The notes under the pieces were generated by a model. It ran no database searches, was not told where the DNA came from, and worked only from the letters and a program-made list of their open reading frames with translations. Position numbers and translations under genes: made by a program. From Dimorphilus gyrociliatus (taxonomy: Eukaryota > Animalia > Annelida), in assembly GCA_904063045.1 (NCBI GenBank), contig CAJFCJ010000016.1, forward strand, positions 248,001 through 312,000: 64,000 nucleotides of DNA, in the 5' to 3' direction. Numbering within the stretch: the first letter of the stretch is position 1; the number at the start of each line of letters is the position of its first letter. Positions 1,102-30,597 of the stretch are shown in pieces.

Positions 1102-4101
1102 ATGTGGCACGAAGCTCGCCGGCAAGAGAGGCGCTTGAAGGGCATGATGGTTGATTATAGTCAAAGAGCCGAAAGACGGAAAGCTTATTACGATAAAATT
1201 GTATTTAAAATTGACATATAGCTCTTAGTATCAAAACTAAACGTCTTTAATTTCTAGAAATTGGAACCTAAACAATTTCTTCGGATTTTCGGAACAAACA
1301 TGAAAATTCATATAGATCAAACTGTTTATGAAAATGCAGAAAGCACTTTGTATGCAACTTACAACAATTATAGAATTATTCTATCTCTTTCATTCCTAGA
1401 GACATTTTAATATTAATCACTTTCATTACCTTTAAAGAGTTCCATGGCAAAACGATCCAAACCTCATAATAGATCGTTTTGATGTTCGCGCTCATTTAGA
1501 TTTCATTCCTGATGATCAAAATTCTGCAGATGATGGGTTTGTTTACCACCCTTTGTACTTCTCAAAGTCTCATAATTAAACAAATTTGTTAATTATTGTT
1601 AGAATTCTACCTTCCAAAGAAGCTGATGAAGAGAATAAATGTAATTATGAGAGATATAGAATTTTAGTTCAAAACGAGTTTGCTGGCGTAAACGAAGAAC
1701 AATGTCTTAAACAAATTCATATAGACGAGCAATATGGAAATACAAAAATTAAGGAAGAGAAGAAAAAGTAATTCAATATGATTTAACTAAAATTTTTTGT
1801 CAACACTGCTTCCATACCTTTAGACCAGTAGAAAAAAAAGCAGCAATTGCCTTTACCTATGAAGATTCCGAAACTGTTCCTGCACCAGTGAAAGGCGAAA
1901 AAGAAGAAGAATTTGAAGATGATGATATGGATTTAGGTATATCATACTTATATTCTACGCTTTTACAAAAATTTCATGTATCTTAATCTCACAGATATGG
2001 AAGTTGATGTAGAAAAATTATCTAAAGAACAAGTAGAGGAAATGAATAAGCATGCTATGAAATACGGAATGATTAAAAATGAATATTATCAGTAAGAGTT
2101 TACCACATATATATTGCTAATGCTATAAGAACTATTTCGAAATCAATTTAGAGCTTTATTAAAAGATAAACAAGAAGCGGAAGAAATTCGTATGGCCAAA
2201 TTACTTGAAGAGGAAAAAGCTCAATTTTCTGTAATTTCCCAAAAAATATTACGTTTCTGCAAATCACATTTATTATTAATAGGGTAGAAAAGCTAGGAAA
2301 GAAAGAAGAATATATAAAGAAAAAAGAATACGAGAAAGAGGTCGATTAAGTCCACCAAGGTATTTATATTTACAAAATTATAAGCTCTACTGCTAATTTC
2401 TGATTATTGCCATTAGTTATGCCGTTCGCGAAAGCCCAAAGCGAGAGAATAGCCGCAGAGAGTAAGATAATTAGTTTAAAATAGCTCTTTGACTCATTTA
2501 AATTTGTTTTAACTTTTGTATTAATTGTTTTAGGTCCTCAAGTTCTCGATCATCTTCTCCAGGGGAGGAGCGTATAACATTTATTACTAGTTTCGGAGGC
2601 GACAGTTCTGATGGGACAAAAGGTGTTGTTCATGGCCCTGCTATTCCTCGTCACCTGTAAGACCAATCCAAGAGCTTAAAATTATGTAATCAATTTATTG
2701 ACCGTAGGAGACAGTCGCAAAAACCATCAAATTATCGCAATAAAAGATATAAAAGATCACGATCGCGAAGTAGAAGCCGGAAACGAAACAGAAGATTTCG
2801 ACGATCTACATCAAGTAGCTCATCACAATCTAAATCCCCATATTCTTCAATTAGACAGAGTTCGCGAAGAGCCAGACGCGATTCATCTAGTTCAGTATCT
2901 TCTGACAGGTTATTTTTCATATCCATTTCTAGATCATTCTTCAATCAAAACCAATCATATATCCAATTTTAGAGATCGATCGAAGTCATCTTCAAAGTCT
3001 AAATCACCCGAAGTAAAAGTACCTATAAAAAAATATAGACGAAAAAGTCTAGAAGAAAGCGTTAGCGATAGCTCATCATCATCGGCCGATGAAGCAACAA
3101 CGAATTCAACAGTTCGCTATAGAACGTTGGTTTTCGTAAATTATTGATCTTTAATAATAAGAAATTTTTTTTTACAGAGGCCAATCTATAGCGATGCCCG
3201 GTAAAAGTCGTTCCTTGAATAAAGTCAGTAGTAAGAATCATTTGTTTTATGGAATAGCTCTCGATACTCCCATATTCGCTAACATTACTTAAAAAGCAAA
3301 ATAGGATAATATTTATTGAAAAAAATATGTAAAAATCGTAGATAGCGGCTTTTTCCCATAGATATATCCTCTTACCAAATTATTAAAGAGACTTACAGTT
3401 CTAATATTTTTTAAAGTTCTAAAGTAATATGTTTATAGTCTGTACACCTTTTATATTTTTCGTCATGTGTGTACACATGGTACTACTCATAAAAGATTAT
3501 ATGTAAATGTATATATACTGTAGTATATATTTTTAACATATAATTTTTTATGTAAATGAATCAACTGTATATTGAATTGTTCTCGCACATGATCTTATTT
3601 TTTGTTAATTTTTTTCAGAAGGCTCTCTCTCAACGAGAATTATTACAGAAACGAATGCAAGCTCAGCTTTCAAAGCATTGTTAGTAATCAGTTTGTCAGA
3701 AATTAATTAAATACTTTAATTTCATTTATATATTAGACAAAGCAGACAAGAGAGCAGAAAAAGAGCGTCACGAGCGTGAAGAGCAGGAAAGAATGGATAG
3801 AGAAGATGAACTAAGAGAATTGTCACTAATGCTGCGAAAACGAGATCGCGAAAGACGTCATAGACAAAGGGAAGACTTAGATTTTGGGGAAGATAGATCG
3901 AGCAGGTCAAGAAGCAGATCTAGATCGAAAAGTAGAAGTCGATCAAGGAGATATAGATCAAGATCAAGGTCAACTAGCAGGTCAAGAAGAACACGATATC
4001 GCTCCTATTCGCGTTCACCTAGACGAAGACGTTCGCGATCTTCTAGATCATCGAGATCGTCATCAAGATCCAATAGACGAGCAAAATTAGTTGATTATTA
4101 A
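1102..4101 (+). CDS. CLASRP: CLK4-associating serine/arginine-rich protein (SFRS16), multi-exon
   Basis: Starts MWHEARRQERRLKGMMVDYSQRAERRKAYYDKI and contains IDRFDVRAHLDFIP and KCNYERYRILVQNEFAG. The C-terminus is RS-rich with DREDELR (ORF 3793-4101). Confidence 0.95.
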
Positions 4102-17976: not shown

Positions 17977-19094
17977 ATGTTCCGTGCCGGATTGGACGTC
18001 CAAAAATTAAAAACCAATCTTCGCCTCTGTATAAATAGGTTGAAGATGCTGGAGAAAAAGAAAACAGAACTAGCCGTTAAAGCTAGAAGGGAAATTGCCG
18101 ACTATCTGCAAGCTGGAAAAGATGATAGAGCCAAGATTCGGGTAGAACACATTATCCGTGAAGATTACTTGGTCGAGGCAATGGAAATAATTGAAATGTA
18201 TTGTGATTTGTTGTTAGCCAGAATGGGGTTAATAGATAGCCAGAAACATATCGACGAGGGTCTTGAAGAGCCGATCGCGACAATAATTTGGGTCTCACCA
18301 AGACTTGAAGCTGAAGTTCCCGAATTAAAAATGGTTGTAAATCAGTTCTCAAAAAAGTATGGCAAGGAATGGGTAATGGCTTCTAGAGCAAATGAATTTC
18401 AAAAAACTAATCCAAAAGTAGAGCATAAGTTGTCTGTTAAAGCACCCGATCCTAACTTGGTTGATAGATATCTCATTGAAATTGCTAAAACTTACAACAT
18501 TCATTATGAACCAAGTCCTGGATTACCTGACATAGAAGTTATGAAAGCAGAAGATTTACTAATTGATTTCAATGACAAAAAAAATCCTAGAGGAGGTGGA
18601 AACGATGGTAATCCGAGTGGTGGTGCAGGAGGAGGAAGTGGAGGTGGAGGTGGAGGTGGGGGCGGTCAAACATACCCTTTTGCATACCCTGCCACTCCTC
18701 AGCAGCCCTACGGGGCAGCCTCTCAACCACCACCTTTGCCCGTTGTTCCTCCAATGGGAGGAGCACCAGTGGCTCATGGCGGAATGCCAATGGGAATGCC
18801 GCCAATGGGACCTGGCGTTGATAATCCACCAGCACCCAGCTATGAAGAAGCCACTAAACCCAGTCAGTCACAGCCAACTGCTCCAAAAGCTGATGATGCT
18901 CTCAACTTACCGGAACTACCTAGAGTTCCAAGCAATGACCTTATTTCTGGAGGTAATTATCATCTCAATATGCTCAGCCCATTTTTATTAAATCATTTTT
19001 TCTAGGTAAAGCTGGAACACAGTCCAACGATGGAGATGATGTCGATTTCGATGATTTAACAAGAAGATTCGCAGATTTAAAGAATAAGAAATAA
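17977..19094 (+). CDS. IST1: IST1 homolog (ESCRT-III associated), 2 coding exons plus a probable 5'UTR intron
   Basis: KLKTNLRLCINRLK, RVEHIIREDY, a Pro-rich linker, the MIM2-like LPELPRVP and terminal MIM1 DFDDLTRRFADLK. Confidence 0.96.
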
Positions 19095-19317
19095 GTTTTT
19101 ATTATTTATTTTCTATTGAATGAACATCATATATGTATGTATATGGATATAACTATTGATTATCTCTGTGATTTATTTTACACAAGCTTTATCCTCGTAT
19201 TGTCTTTAAAAAAATATGACTCATTCATTTCGCAATGAATAATTGAACTAGGAACTATTTTATTTATTAAACGAAGAGTTTAAATAATTTTATAAAACAT
19301 TTACACTTGTAAGGAAT

Positions 19318-21290
19318 TCAAATCTGTTCAATCTTATCACTCTGGCCGGCTTCTTTTAAGAAATTAGACCTGTAGAGTAATCATTCAGACATTAAATAAA
19401 CGATGATTTTAAAGAAATAGATAAAAGGCTAACCAAGTAATTGGAAAATATTCTCCCACATCCGAAGTATCTAGCTTTCCTTGCTTTAATTTGGGAAAGA
19501 ACCATTGGAAAAAATGATCTATCAACTCCTAACATGAAAAGTTTAAATGAATTGAAATGGTTTGGGTTATGACTTGAATTAAAAGAATTATATTATTACC
19601 TGCCATTTTGATGTATATTGATTCTCTAAACCTAACCATTGCTGAATTTCCCTTAATCGTTTTACAGTCTATAAAATATACTGGTTAATAAATCGAAAAA
19701 CGCAAAACCGGATTGTTATACCTTTTCATGAACTTCTCTTGGATTCATTGGATTCTTTTTGTGTTTATGAAGAGCATTTCTTACCTTTTCTCTGATTGCC
19801 CGACAAATAATATACCTTTGAAAACAAATAGAATTGAGACAATACATCGAGATCTTATATTAAGATTAATCTCTACCAGGCTGTTTTCTTTTTCAGCAAG
19901 CCAAAAACCTGTCCTGATGAATCGAGGAAATAAAAAACTTTACCCTCGTATTGATAACCATTTCTAACTGCTTTAAATTGATCATCAAGCTCCTGCGGTG
20001 GAATTTCTGTATACGATACAGTATCAAAACCTAAACATTTGGCTATCTCAATTCCTATATGTGGTGGCACGCATCCCAATTGGTTATTATTTGTTAAAAG
20101 AGCATCATTAAAAGTCCAAGTAATAAACATTAGTTTAGGCCTAAGGGTAAAAATATAAATTTTTTATAGGTAGATGTGTATTAAATGATAAATAATATAA
20201 TTACTCTTTCAAGTAAGACAGATTCTCAACGTGTTGGGTTTGAGGATTAAGAATTTCGAATATACCGGTCACCCTTGCTCGAGACAAAAATTCTAAGATT
20301 CTATTAAACAAGAGTATATACGCTTTGATAATCTTATTAAATAAAAAATATATTGGAATACAAACAAGTGTTTATCATTCTTTGAAAGTTTCTTTAAGAA
20401 ATGTGCTATTGTGTATGCAACAACTTTAGCTACTGCATATCTTTGACCTTCATATTCATCAATTTGATCTATAATGAAAATATTTAATAACTTGGTACAT
20501 TTTATATTTAATGGTATTTCTTACTTGTTTCTGTAAAGTAGATGTGAACATTCTTTGAACCAGCACATATAATATGCTTTCCATTAACTTTTAGACAACT
20601 TAAATGAGCTGCTTCACCATTTGCTTTATCGGTGGCTATAATTAACGATGCTTCCTCAAGTGGCTAAAAATTATTAGATAGTATGACGGATTTGTTTAGA
20701 TCTCATTATAAACTTATTGTTACCCTTGCAAAATATCTCTGCCATATTTTTTCATCTCCTGAATCGTCAACTCTATCATCGTCGTCTCCGAGTCCACCAG
20801 TGAACTTCTTTAAAGCGAATGTTGTACATACTGGTCCTTGACTTCCCTCTACGCTTAGAAATGCATTACCCCTGGCAACCCGACTTCTTATTTCCTGATG
20901 TCGATCATAAATTTTATCGTCTGGGCCGTATTTAACAAAAACTTTTACATCAATCGCAGTTCCATTAAGTATACTATGAGGGACCTTGGTTTCGGTTAAT
21001 CGTAAATTATTGTTTTGTCTTGCCCAATTAAGCCAACTGTTACATATTTTTAAAAACGAGGTTATAAGTTATAGTTAATATAAGTTGAGAACACATAACA
21101 TTGTGCAATCAATTGAAGACTACAAAGCTTACTCTTTTGCTTCAGAAACAAGTTGATCCGCCGGTGTTTGAGATCTCTGCTTCAAAATTTCAAGATATTC
21201 GTTTATAGATGTAATATAGTTGCTTTGTTTAAGTTTTTCTTCAATAAAAGCAAAAACGTCAACACATTTTATATCACACGGCGATGCCAT
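19318..21290 (-). CDS. Putative ATP-dependent RNA ligase, T4 Rnl1/Trl1-ligase-like, 10 exons, about 460 aa
   Basis: Spliced GT-AG reconstruction shows ARG..KKF, motif I TDKANG (Lys at 20625-20627), Ia GSKN, III GIFEIL, IV YEGKV and V KKKTAWY, in the correct order. Confidence 0.72.
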
Positions 21291-21592: not shown

Positions 21593-22565
21593 TTAAAACA
21601 TAAACGGATAATCTGTTTGATGGGACCTTTTCATGGCGTTTTCCCTAACTTTCTCTTGTAAAATCACTTCAATAGTTTGAATTTTTCTAGCTAAAATTTC
21701 AGATTGTTGAAAAGTTAAATCTCTATCCATTTCCAACTTTAAACGAAGGTATTGACAAACTTCAGATAAAATATGGGAATTATAAAATTCTAAAGCTTCT
21801 TTATCCTCCAAATAATTACCTATTTTATATTAGAAAAATAATGTATGATTCATATATCGTTGCCTCTTTTTCTTCTTTTTAAAAAGAGAAAACAAAAAAA
21901 GGGTCTGTGTATTTACCTGAAGCAGTTTGAACATCTTCGGAATTTGTTAATTCTTTGGAGTAGCAAGATTCTGTAAATTCTGAGAATGTGATGTAGGCTG
22001 AAACTAGGTCATCTTCACTTATATCACCAAGAATACTTTTGTTATACATGTATTGTAATTTTTCTTCCCAGAAATTAGTATTAATGGTACGAATATGACA
22101 CCTTTGAACGCACCTTGAAATTTCATAAACATCCCTGGCGTTTCTGAGTTCTTTTATTACGCCTTCAATAATCTCTTTTGCTATTGTTTTTGTTCTTAAA
22201 AAATCGTATTTATATGCTGGACTGAGTTGACGAAAATCCGAATGATCCCTCCAAAGGAATTTATCTAAATCTAGAGGATCAATTTTTTCATCCTGTCTGG
22301 CTGGTAATGGAATTTCAGGTTCAGAATACGAATGGCAAGATTCTTCCTTCTGTTTGTTACAGGTTGGCTGTTCACTTTGCTTTAGGAAGAATACGCAACC
22401 GTTTCTCTGTTCCATAACATATTCACCAATATATTTATCTTTCTCTTGGTGTTGATTATCTTTAACCTCTTCATGGACCTCTTTCACCGGCTTCTTGGAA
22501 CCCTTTTTCTTGTTTTTAGGTTTGTCAGCAGGTTTAGCCTTAGGTATTGTGTGTCGCCGTCCCAT
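21593..22565 (-). CDS. Uncharacterised two-exon protein with a basic N-terminus and a predicted helical C-terminus
   Basis: The 228-codon ORF 21879-22565 splices in frame (TCAG|gtaaat...aaatag|GT) to ORF 21593-21811. No recognised domain. Confidence 0.6.
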
Positions 22566-24076: not shown

Positions 24077-25225
24077 ATGTCTGCCCCTCCAAAACCTTGG
24101 GAAGGAAGTGCTCCCACAATGGAAAATTCGTATAATCCCATTAGTTCTAATGGATTGCTGTGAGTAATTTAAATGAACAACTAGGAATTAAATTCACAAT
24201 TTCGTATTGTTCTTCAATTGCGTTAGTTCTCAAACTCCATCACAAGCTCCTCCAGTTCCTGTACGAAATCAACAAGGCTCATATTCAAGCTATAATTCTC
24301 CATATTCTTCACCTTACTCCTCGCCATATATGTCTGGTGGAATGGGACTCTCTCCATACTCATCATATTCACCATATTCGTCAATAGGCGGTGCATACGG
24401 TGGATATGGAGGATATAGAAATTATGGCCAAGGTGGCTATCCTCAAAGTAACTTTGTAAGGCAGGCAGAGGCATCCTCTCGAAATGCTTTCCAGTCGATC
24501 GAATCAGTTGTCAGCGCTTTCAGTTCCATAAGCATGATGTTGGAGTCAACTTATTCAGCTTTATATAATTCTTTTCGAGCGGTTTTGGGTGTCGCTGGTC
24601 ATCTGACTCACGTTAAAGACCAATTAACTGCAATACTATCCTCCATCGCACTTTTTAAAACATTACGATACTTATGGCGAAAACTTCAGGTGCTCCTAAA
24701 ACTAAAGCCTGAATCAACCGTAGAAGATGTGTGGAAAGAGGTCAACATTCGAAAAGCTACAGGAGATGGAAATGGTAAATCCAACTGGCCTATTATTATG
24801 TTTTTTGCTATAGTGATGGCAGGACCATGGCTTATTTGGAAGCTATTGTCATCTTTGGGGAAGAATTCAGGTAGAAAATATATTCATTTATTTATCGAAG
24901 TCACTGATTGACGTAACGATTTTTTTTATCTATAGAATCAGAGTGGCATTTAGGAAAGTCTCCACATTTTATCTGTCAGGTAAATTATGATTTTGAAGGA
25001 AGGCAAGAAGACGAAATATCCGTTAAACAAGGTGAAAAGCTACGAGTTGCCCCCCAAGAAATGCAAACTGTTCAAAACTGGTTAATATGTGCAACTCCTT
25101 CTGGAAAAATTGGCTTAGTTCCTCAAAACTATATTAAAATCATTGGAAAAGGACGAATCGAAGATGAAACTGAAGTTAAACCTCCAAGCGAAGAAAATTT
25201 GAATACAGCTTGGAAAGAAGATTGA
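24077..25225 (+). CDS. PEX13: Peroxisomal membrane protein PEX13
   Basis: MSAPPKPWE, a Y/G-rich region, AEASSRNAFQSIESVVSAFSSISMMLESTY, a TM segment WPIIMFFAIV and a C-terminal SH3 (YDFEGRQEDEISVKQGEKL...GLVPQNY). Confidence 0.96.
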
Positions 25226-28894: not shown

Positions 28895-30597
28895 TTAGCC
28901 TTTGATGACGGCAACAGGTCGCAGCTTGAAACATTTCTGACTTATTCCGGCAATATGACCTGTTTTGAGAAAGACCTTCGTTAATAGAGATTATTTAAAT
29001 TTAAACAATACACTTACAAGTATCAACAACATCTGTAACATTTTTGTACGATTCCGGTGCTTCTTCCATAACCAGTTTTGGTGATGCCACCCTAATAGAT
29101 ATTCCTTGCTTATCTAACGCTTTCAGGACATCTACGTAATCTAAATTTCGCCTAGACTTTGCCCTGGATAGTGCACGTCCAGCTCCATGGCAAGTCGAAC
29201 CAAATGTCTGTTGCATACCAATTTCAGTGCCTGTCAAGACATAACTACAGGTACCCATAGTGCCACCAATAAGTACTGGCTGACCAGTTAGTTGATAATC
29301 AACGGGTATTAAAGGATGGTGAGGAGGAAAAGCTCTAGTTGAACCTTTTCTATGAACAAGTAGAGTTTTTTCTTTACCTTGGACGAAATGTTGTTCAACC
29401 TTAGCAATATTATGGCTAACATCATATATCATATGCATGTCTAAATCATCTGGGGTAGAGTTAAACATTTTTGCAAAACTTTGTCGACAGAGAAAAGTCA
29501 TCGAAGATCGATTGACCCATGCATAGTTAGCAGCGGCAGCCATACCTTTTAAGTAATCTTGACCTTCCTTTGAGTGAATTTGAGCACATGCTAACTGCCG
29601 ATCATTTACCTAAAATAATATTAAAGATAATTTGAATTGTGTTGATAAAAAAGTCATATAGTATTTGATGGCTACCTCAATTTTATCTCTTTTCATTGCT
29701 TTTTCCATGGACACAAGTGCATCTGTAGCCACTTGGTGACCTAATCCTCGTGATCCACAATGGATCATGACACAGACTTGTCCCTCGAATTCTATACCCA
29801 TTCTCTTGGCGTTATGTTCATTGAAAATTTCTTCAACAACTTGAATTTCAGCATAATGATTACCAGCACCTAAAGTACCAAGTTGAGGTAGACCGCGTTT
29901 CTTTGCTCTGGCCGAGACACAGTTAGGATCGGCTTGTAGCATACGACCATATTCTTCGCAATGTTCTTTATCTTCAGCCCAAATGTAACCTTCTCTTAAC
30001 GACCAATCCATTCCCATTTCAAGAGCTTCTTCCAGATCTTTAGCTCCCATTGGTATAATTCCCTTAGAGCCAACTCCAACAGGAATATGATCAAACATAG
30101 ATTGAGCTAATTGTTCCTTAACCGGCTGAACATCTTTTTCAGATAAATTTGTTCTGAGTAGCCTCACACCACAATTAATATCAAAACCAACACCCCCGGG
30201 AGATACTATTGCATTTGGATCATCCATGTCAAAAGCAGCCATGTTTCCAATTGCAAAACCATAACCCGAATGAATATCCGGTAAACCTATTGAATTCTAT
30301 ATAAAGAAAATATTATTAGCTTCATGCTGGAACTCAATGGAAGAGAAAATTATTTACCCCGACAATTCCTGGTAGGGCAGCAACATTTGCTATTTGTTTT
30401 ACTCCTGGAAGAAATCCACCAAAGCCTCCCGGTCTGCATGCATGCTGAAGCTCTTCAAACATCAACTTCTCCAAATGATCATTTACGTAGAAGACTCCTT
30501 CCACTTTCATATTTGGTACAAAACCTTTCTTGATTCTCCATGATGTTGGAGTAATTCTTTCAAGATACTCCAGTTCCTCACTGTAGCTTCTAACCAT
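28895..30597 (-). CDS. RTCB: RNA-splicing ligase RtcB (3'-phosphate/5'-OH ligase), 4 exons
   Basis: [46 protein letters not shown] and RPVAVIKG*. All metal-binding and guanylylation motifs are intact. Confidence 0.98.

Follow-up and report, generated by a model that had tools for sequence, protein, structure and literature searches.

A stand-alone RNA ligase gene of the annelid Dimorphilus gyrociliatus: a DUF7920 protein with a predicted fold closest to the fungal Trl1 ligase domain

What kind of RNA ligase is encoded by a ten-exon gene of the annelid Dimorphilus gyrociliatus, and how did this animal come to have it? The gene lies on the minus strand, at 21290-19318, of a 64,000-nucleotide (nt) stretch of contig CAJFCJ010000016.1 (assembly GCA_904063045.1, positions 248,001 to 312,000), hereafter called the window. 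In papers up to 2026, metazoans join tRNA and XBP1 exons by RtcB, Trl1-type ligases are assigned to fungi, plants and some protists, and the lancelet is treated as the lone exception. An earlier note, made from the DNA letters alone, had read the gene as coding for a T4 Rnl1-like ATP-dependent RNA ligase, domesticated and possibly derived from a phage or virus, and had seen in it a sign of an undescribed RNA-repair pathway in this lineage. It proposed structural comparison with T4 Rnl1 and fungal Trl1, and a survey of phylogenetic distribution.

Our answer is a different one. We consider it likely that the product is a sealing-only RNA ligase, stand-alone and ATP-dependent, of the Trl1 ligase domain (Trl1-LIG) or Rnl6 branch, probably dependent on a 2'-phosphate, and that the gene is an old holozoan one passed on vertically. 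This sealing-only, Trl1-LIG-type ligase carries the label DUF7920 in the databases and very probably belongs to the family of the lancelet ligase BfRNL.

Gene structure and family membership

The ten-exon gene is real. Its nine introns all begin with GT and end with AG, and the joined coding sequence of 1383 nt encodes 460 amino acids (aa) followed by a TGA stop, as the earlier note had modelled it (ten canonical exons, about 460 aa). In blastp alignments with full-length homologues, residues 1-457 of the spliced protein are covered at 43-48% identity (E ~1e-139). Against a profile of 33 homologues the protein scores 560.6 bits over residues 8-458. None of the nine exon junctions falls at an insertion or deletion relative to the family consensus, and the protein keeps every one of the 38 residues that never vary across the 33 aligned homologues. 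A chance assembly of exons is thereby ruled out. Exon 6 is the sole exon that can be seen as a sizeable open reading frame in the mechanical list (19873-20130, 85 aa), again as first described, and the motifs ARGNAF, KKF, KANG, SKN, FEILNP, EGKV and KKKTAWY are all present in the spliced protein. The base composition of the gene is ordinary for the host.

The encoded protein belongs to Pfam family DUF7920 (PF25536). A search with exon 6 against 1.84 billion representative proteins returned 93 representatives, and the full-length ones among them (446-487 aa) match at about residues 272-364, the same place that exon 6 occupies in our model. Homologues of 450-490 aa align with the window protein from end to end. 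The ten full-length homologues that we tested match DUF7920 with E values of 1e-6 to 1e-17, nine of them above its gathering threshold of 27 bits (27.5-63 bits). Single exon pieces of the window protein gave no match in a Pfam scan. Because the profile against which the spliced protein was scored is built from 33 DUF7920 proteins, its membership is safe in practice.

Scans of the same ten homologues with E values up to 1 yielded DUF7920, RNA_lig_T4_1 (PF09511) and a few weak, chance-like matches to unrelated families, and nothing else. The RNA_lig_T4_1 matches are confined to a few homologues (E ~1e-3) and reach 18-20 bits at best, below the gathering threshold of 28.3 bits; a precomputed match to PF09511 exists for the Mya arenaria homologue only. 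RLIG1/C12orf29 gave no match in these scans, which agrees with the first impression that the protein does not resemble that ligase. Pfam scans found a kinase or 2H phosphodiesterase domain in no homologue, and the 460-aa protein ends after its C-terminal domain (C-domain). NCBIfam gave no match, and phmmer searches of exons 2 and 6 against PDB sequences returned nothing relevant. Among phage families, PHROG 562 (the T4 RnlA family) is the best match for six of six members (E 1.8e-8 to 0.04), and hhalign sets motifs III, IV and V of the family in register with T4 RnlA (from NC_000866) at E 0.0085. The database names of all members are 'uncharacterized', 'hypothetical' or 'DUF7920 domain-containing'.

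Predicted fold and conserved residues

The predicted fold is that of an Rnl1-superfamily ligase, and its closest relative is the LIG domain of fungal Trl1 (Rnl6 clade), not T4 Rnl1. For this comparison we used an AlphaFold2 model of the homologue P0002, which is 44% identical to the window protein, computed from the 33-sequence alignment. The model has a mean predicted local distance difference test score (pLDDT) of 89.2 and a predicted template modelling score of 0.87. In a Foldseek search of the PDB, the top six matches are all fungal Trl1 LIG structures (6n67, 6n0t, 8rbj, 6n0v, 9r3w, 9qw7), with E values of 1e-12 to 4e-11 and template modelling (TM) scores of 0.64-0.71 on the target. They are followed by T4 Rnl1 and then by archaeal Rnl3, Rnl2 and Rnl5.

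Pairwise alignment with VIA-align gave the same order. The superposition of the P0002 model on 6n0t takes in 352 of 383 residues, with a Z score of 25.4 and a root mean square deviation of 3.2 A. This alignment pairs model residues 20-462 with chain residues 21-405, and covers both the adenylyltransferase domain and the helical C-terminal domain. With T4 Rnl1 the Z score is 18.1, over 249-271 aligned residues, and the alignment (2c5u, 5tt6, 9do4) goes no further than chain residues 278-288 out of about 374, so that it takes in the adenylyltransferase domain only. Since Trl1-LIG superposes over both domains and T4 Rnl1 over the N-terminal one alone, the C-domain appears to be of the Trl1 (Rnl6) kind. 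The reading of the protein as T4 Rnl1-like thus stands as to the superfamily and the lysine-adenylylating class, and falls as to the closest enzyme. Similarly, a helical C-terminal domain had been predicted and is there in the homologue model (helices at 357-453), but it is not of the T4 type.

The residues expected of such a ligase are invariant in the 33 sequences, and the window protein keeps all of them: R108-G109, K130-F131, K168-x-N-G, S-K192-N, E251, E333-G334 and K351-x-K353. They correspond to T4 Rnl1 residues that we take to be R54, K75/F77, K99, K119, E159, E227/G228 and K240/K242.

The site that reads the 2'-phosphate also has a putative counterpart. In fungal LIG this phosphate is bound by a triad: a His that follows the motif III Glu by 9 aa, and two Arg in RxxR spacing where the C-domain begins, directly behind motif V (Ghosh and Shuman 2024, PMC11404444). 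In the window protein, His259 stands 8 aa after Glu251; counted from Lys353, Arg361 follows at 8 aa and Arg364 at 11 aa, where a C-domain helix begins. None of the three varies in the 33 sequences, from choanoflagellate to lancelet, and we regard them as the candidate triad.

A loop that follows the KF motif, K-F-T-G-G-x-G-D-x-D-D (aa 129-143), is invariant or nearly so in the family. Its pLDDT is 63-71, and we could not relate it to any described Trl1 or Rnl1 motif.

The BfRNL family

BfRNL of Branchiostoma floridae (Englert et al. 2010, PNAS 107:16834) is described (PMC10946426, PMC3400036, PMC4408790) as an ATP-dependent ligase that stands alone, has a strict need for a 2'-phosphate, works with a separate PNK/CPDase, and is weakly homologous to the ligases of yeast and plants. 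In the supplement of Popow et al. 2012, BfRNL (gi|260818956) represents an Rnl1-related family that the Pfam RNA_lig_T4 model misses. In the searches made, Branchiostoma has exactly one DUF7920 cluster, with the orthologues P0124, P0203 and P0208; P0124 and P0208 are 43-45% identical to the window protein. Given the sub-threshold PF09511 matches, the Trl1-like fold and the single Branchiostoma cluster, DUF7920 fits the published description of the BfRNL family, and there is a good probability that the two are one. The idea of an undescribed repair pathway in the annelid lineage was therefore overstated: lancelets have an orthologue, and a ligase characterised in 2010 fits the description of the family.

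Proposed reaction

On the invariant ligase residues and the positions of the putative triad, we infer the three-step pathway of such enzymes. Lys168 in the KANG motif would react with ATP to form a ligase-AMP intermediate; the AMP would then be moved onto the 5'-phosphate end of the RNA (AppRNA); and the 3'-OH would attack the adenylylated end and seal the break. The all-helical C-domain, together with His259, Arg361 and Arg364, would bind the terminal 2'-phosphate. In fungal LIG, end joining needs the C-domain, which reads the 2'-phosphate end and not the shape of the tRNA (PMC11404444). The ends to be joined would then be 3'-OH,2'-phosphate and 5'-phosphate, as with the fungal and plant tRNA ligases and lancelet BfRNL. 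Since neither a kinase nor a cyclic-phosphodiesterase domain is part of the polypeptide, healing of the ends would fall to separate enzymes, and the 2'-phosphate at the junction would be removed by an enzyme of the Tpt1 type. The substrates would presumably be tRNA halves, XBP1-type mRNA or damaged RNA.

Several points weigh against our answer. Searches of PDB sequences with the family profile, with the motif I-III block and with the motif IV-V block (phmmer/HMM, hidden Markov model) gave no Trl1 or Rnl1 match; since HMMER searches of these sequences miss Trl1, the link to Trl1 rests on predicted structure, and the mapping of residues is indirect. Moreover, the structure is that of a homologue, 44% identical to the window protein. 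The assignment of the triad goes by distance from the motifs, not by superposed coordinates, and compared with the fungal enzymes the spacing is shorter by one residue. Among proteins tied to DUF7920 by accession, none has a known enzyme activity. Finally, gi|260818956, the entry for BfRNL, could not be matched to the Branchiostoma DUF7920 protein XP_002604648.1, and none of the eight members of the XP_002604648.1 cluster is named an RNA ligase.

These points leave some room for another reaction. The protein might have the ligase fold and adenylylate itself, and yet have a physiological role other than the joining of 2'-phosphate ends, such as sealing ordinary 3'-OH/5'-phosphate breaks, RNA circularisation or 5'-adenylylation; it would then not be equivalent to BfRNL or Trl1. 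We think this unlikely. The shift of one residue in the His and Arg spacing would suit such a role, but the His and both Arg residues are invariant in 33 of 33 sequences and lie where they are expected relative to motifs III and V. The family has invariant features of its own, chiefly the acidic loop of low pLDDT; the C-domain, which fungi need for end joining, is nevertheless structurally conserved. RtcB coexists with the gene and already serves tRNA and XBP1 splicing in animals, and the stringency for a 2'-phosphate differs between known enzymes (PMC11404444). Still, of the stand-alone animal ligases of this kind, the sole one to have been assayed is reported to require the 2'-phosphate.

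A related alternative concerns the identity of the family and leaves the fold as it is. DUF7920 could be distinct from BfRNL, forming a separate Rnl6-like family in most invertebrate phyla and choanoflagellates. We rate this as improbable. If it were so, the family would constitute a third, uncharacterised 5'-phosphate RNA ligase in animals, beside RtcB and RLIG1. A literature search for DUF7920/PF25536 and for the accessions of the Branchiostoma member (BRAFLDRAFT_126791, XP_002604648, C3YGD8) found no paper on either.

Distribution and origin

The survey of distribution draws on two lists of 120 matches, with about 200 relatives overall. Among the matches listed are gastropods, bivalves, a chiton, the annelid Owenia, nemerteans, a bryozoan and a flatworm; rotifers, a tardigrade, copepods and barnacles; hemichordates and four Branchiostoma taxa; and, outside animals, the choanoflagellate Salpingoeca punica and GC-rich sequences that are probably from protists. 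The family therefore spans all three bilaterian superphyla. Vertebrate, insect and nematode members are absent from the matches listed, which suggests repeated loss.

Maximum-likelihood trees recover groups at the level of phyla. The window protein falls inside a lophotrochozoan group (ultrafast bootstrap 93, Shimodaira-Hasegawa-like approximate likelihood ratio test 96), and the protein closest to it is that of Owenia, at 47% identity. The gene is most likely an ancient holozoan gene that has been inherited vertically.

Some members are longer than the window protein. P0073 (712 aa) and P0077 (775 aa) are GC-rich and possibly from protists; they keep all motifs, have long insertions rich in Ala, Gly and Asp, and group with the choanoflagellate in the tree. 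Members from copepods and marine metagenomes (P0181 of Neocalanus flemingeri, 709 aa, and P0192, P0021, P0195 and P0198) are about 680-710 aa long and have a C-terminal B3/4 domain (PF03483) at E 4e-6 to 1e-4, just under threshold. The B3/4 domain is also part of PheRS beta, and the fusion hints at tRNA as the substrate. P0088 (856 aa) is a family member fused to a C-terminal Methyltransf_16 domain (lysine methyltransferase; E 6.5e-22).

Could the gene have been taken from a phage or virus? In this scenario it would be a tRNA-repair ligase of the T4 Rnl1 type, with a C-domain that recognises tRNA as in T4 Rnl1. The remote similarity to the T4 RnlA family (PHROG 562, hhalign) would fit, as would the place of T4 Rnl1 as second-best structural family (Z 18); however, Trl1-LIG is clearly better and matches in both domains, and the C-domain of T4 Rnl1 is left unmatched. 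By tblastn, exon 6 had no match in 50,697 phage records, and a peptide scan with exon 6 found no relatives in IMG/VR.

Viruses of eukaryotes do hold relatives. In BFVD the best structural match comes from a crustacean virus, Panulirus argus virus 1, whose protein is named 'T4 RNA ligase' (25% identity, E 2e-31). The 107-kb IMG/VR contig IMGVR_UViG_2974720306_000001 encodes, at 2938-4092 of its plus strand, an intronless 384-aa DUF7920 protein (Pfam E 1e-15) that is 28% identical to P0002, which heads the query alignment. These two matches indicate that large DNA viruses of eukaryotes carry this type of ligase. Yet in the tree the sequence from the IMG/VR contig has a very long branch, of length 5.3, and does not form a sister pair with the window protein, which is encoded with nine introns in DNA of ordinary host composition. 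Moreover, the family reaches from a choanoflagellate and protists to every bilaterian superphylum, with a gene tree that mirrors the phyla. The wide distribution and the lophotrochozoan placement do not support a recent capture, and the domesticated phage or viral gene of the earlier note is not borne out; we regard such an origin as very unlikely. Exchange with giant viruses in deep time, in either direction, may still have occurred.

A relic gene, decaying or without function, or an artefact of the exon model would accord with the lack of Pfam matches to single exon pieces, but is extremely improbable given the intact frame over ten exons with canonical splice sites, the full set of invariant residues, the profile score of 560 bits and the junctions free of indels.

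Genomic neighbourhood

The exons and the neighbouring genes are listed in Table 1. The window holds RNA ligases of both kinds, with the RtcB gene about 8 kb from the DUF7920 gene. A linkage of RtcB with the DUF7920 ligase was not seen in Hypsibius (tardigrade) or Brachionus (rotifer), and we therefore treat the closeness of the two genes as coincidence.

Table 1. The ligase gene and its surroundings in the window (coordinates in nt from the first letter of the window; residues in aa)
Feature	Position	Strand	Description
IST1	17977-19005	+	flanks the ligase gene, convergent
Possible poly(A) signal	19259-19268	-	two overlapping AATAAA about 50 nt past the stop; weak, as AATAAA is no more frequent in the AT-rich window than by chance
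Exon 10	19369-19318	-	aa 444-460 and TGA stop (19320-19318)
Exon 9	19528-19434	-	aa 413-444; C-domain helices
Exon 8	19668-19600	-	aa 390-412; C-domain helix
Exon 7	19815-19722	-	aa 358-389; start of helical C-domain; Arg361 (19808-19806) and Arg364 (19799-19797) in RAIRE, candidate RxxR pair of the 2'-phosphate triad
Exon 6	20140-19877	-	aa 270-358; motif IV E333-G334 (EGKV); motif V K351/K353 (KKKTAW)
Exon 5	20300-20205	-	aa 238-270; motif III FEIL, Glu251 (20263-20261); His259 (20239-20237), candidate first member of the 2'-phosphate triad
Exon 4	20468-20366	-	aa 204-238; helical insert
Exon 3	20663-20525	-	aa 158-204; motif I KANG, predicted AMP-accepting Lys168 (20633-20631); motif Ia S191-K192-N193
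Exon 2	21036-20724	-	aa 53-157; R108-G109 (ARGNAF); K130-F131 (KKF); conserved acidic loop TGGLGDDDD
Acidic loop after KF motif	20766-20810	-	aa 129-143, in exon 2
Exon 1	21290-21133	-	aa 1-53; ATG 21290-21288; N-terminal helices; donor GTAAGC; N-terminus aligns with homologues from aa 1
Upstream neighbour gene	21593-22565	-	open reading frames of 228 and 72 aa; lysine-rich N-terminus; no Pfam match
Peroxin-13	24207-24908		
RtcB tRNA-splicing ligase	29004-30242	-	two exons, each Pfam RtcB at E 1e-61

Significance and comparison with known ligases

If the predicted fold and the residue assignments hold, a sealing enzyme of the Trl1-LIG type, with an apparently intact 2'-phosphate pocket, was ancestral to animals and has been kept together with RtcB in many invertebrate phyla. 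The literature seems to have taken no notice of how widely the DUF7920 family occurs in invertebrates; as reviews still describe animals as relying on RtcB only, the family is under-recognised. The tie to BfRNL, if true, would give a function to a whole family that is now known by a DUF label. It would also raise the question of what role a second ligation pathway has in such animals, be it in tRNA splicing, RNA repair or stress responses.

The best structural match of the family model is Trl1-LIG, the founder of the Rnl6 clade (Chaetomium thermophilum 6N0T/6N67/8RBJ, Candida glabrata 9QW7). In both, an adenylyltransferase domain that carries motifs I, Ia, III, IV and V, with motif I of the form KxNG, is joined to an all-helical C-domain (aa 328-406 in the Chaetomium enzyme). 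The two differ in sequence, with 14-17% identity in the structural alignment and no match at the level of HMMER, and the invariant acidic loop that follows the KF motif is peculiar to the family. Full-length Trl1 and the plant RNA ligases have the ligase fused to a kinase and a 2H cyclic phosphodiesterase, whereas the window protein lacks both. Unlike Trl1, the DUF7920 ligase occurs in animals that also have RtcB.

T4 Rnl1 (RnlA, gp63) shares the adenylyltransferase fold with the family; its C-terminal tRNA-specificity domain, however, is without counterpart in the family model. T4 Rnl1 does not need a 2'-phosphate.

BfRNL, by its published description, is like the window protein an animal ligase that stands alone, without healing domains. 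The RNA ligases of Mucorales (for example Mucor circinelloides), which we compared by description only, are likewise LIG-only enzymes that rely on healing enzymes in trans and prefer 2'-phosphate ends; in contrast to the family, they are fungal and recognisably homologous to Trl1-LIG by sequence.

The other two animal RNA ligases, RtcB and RLIG1/C12orf29, also join broken RNA ends. RtcB does so with an unrelated fold and another chemistry, which uses GTP and activates the 3'-phosphate.

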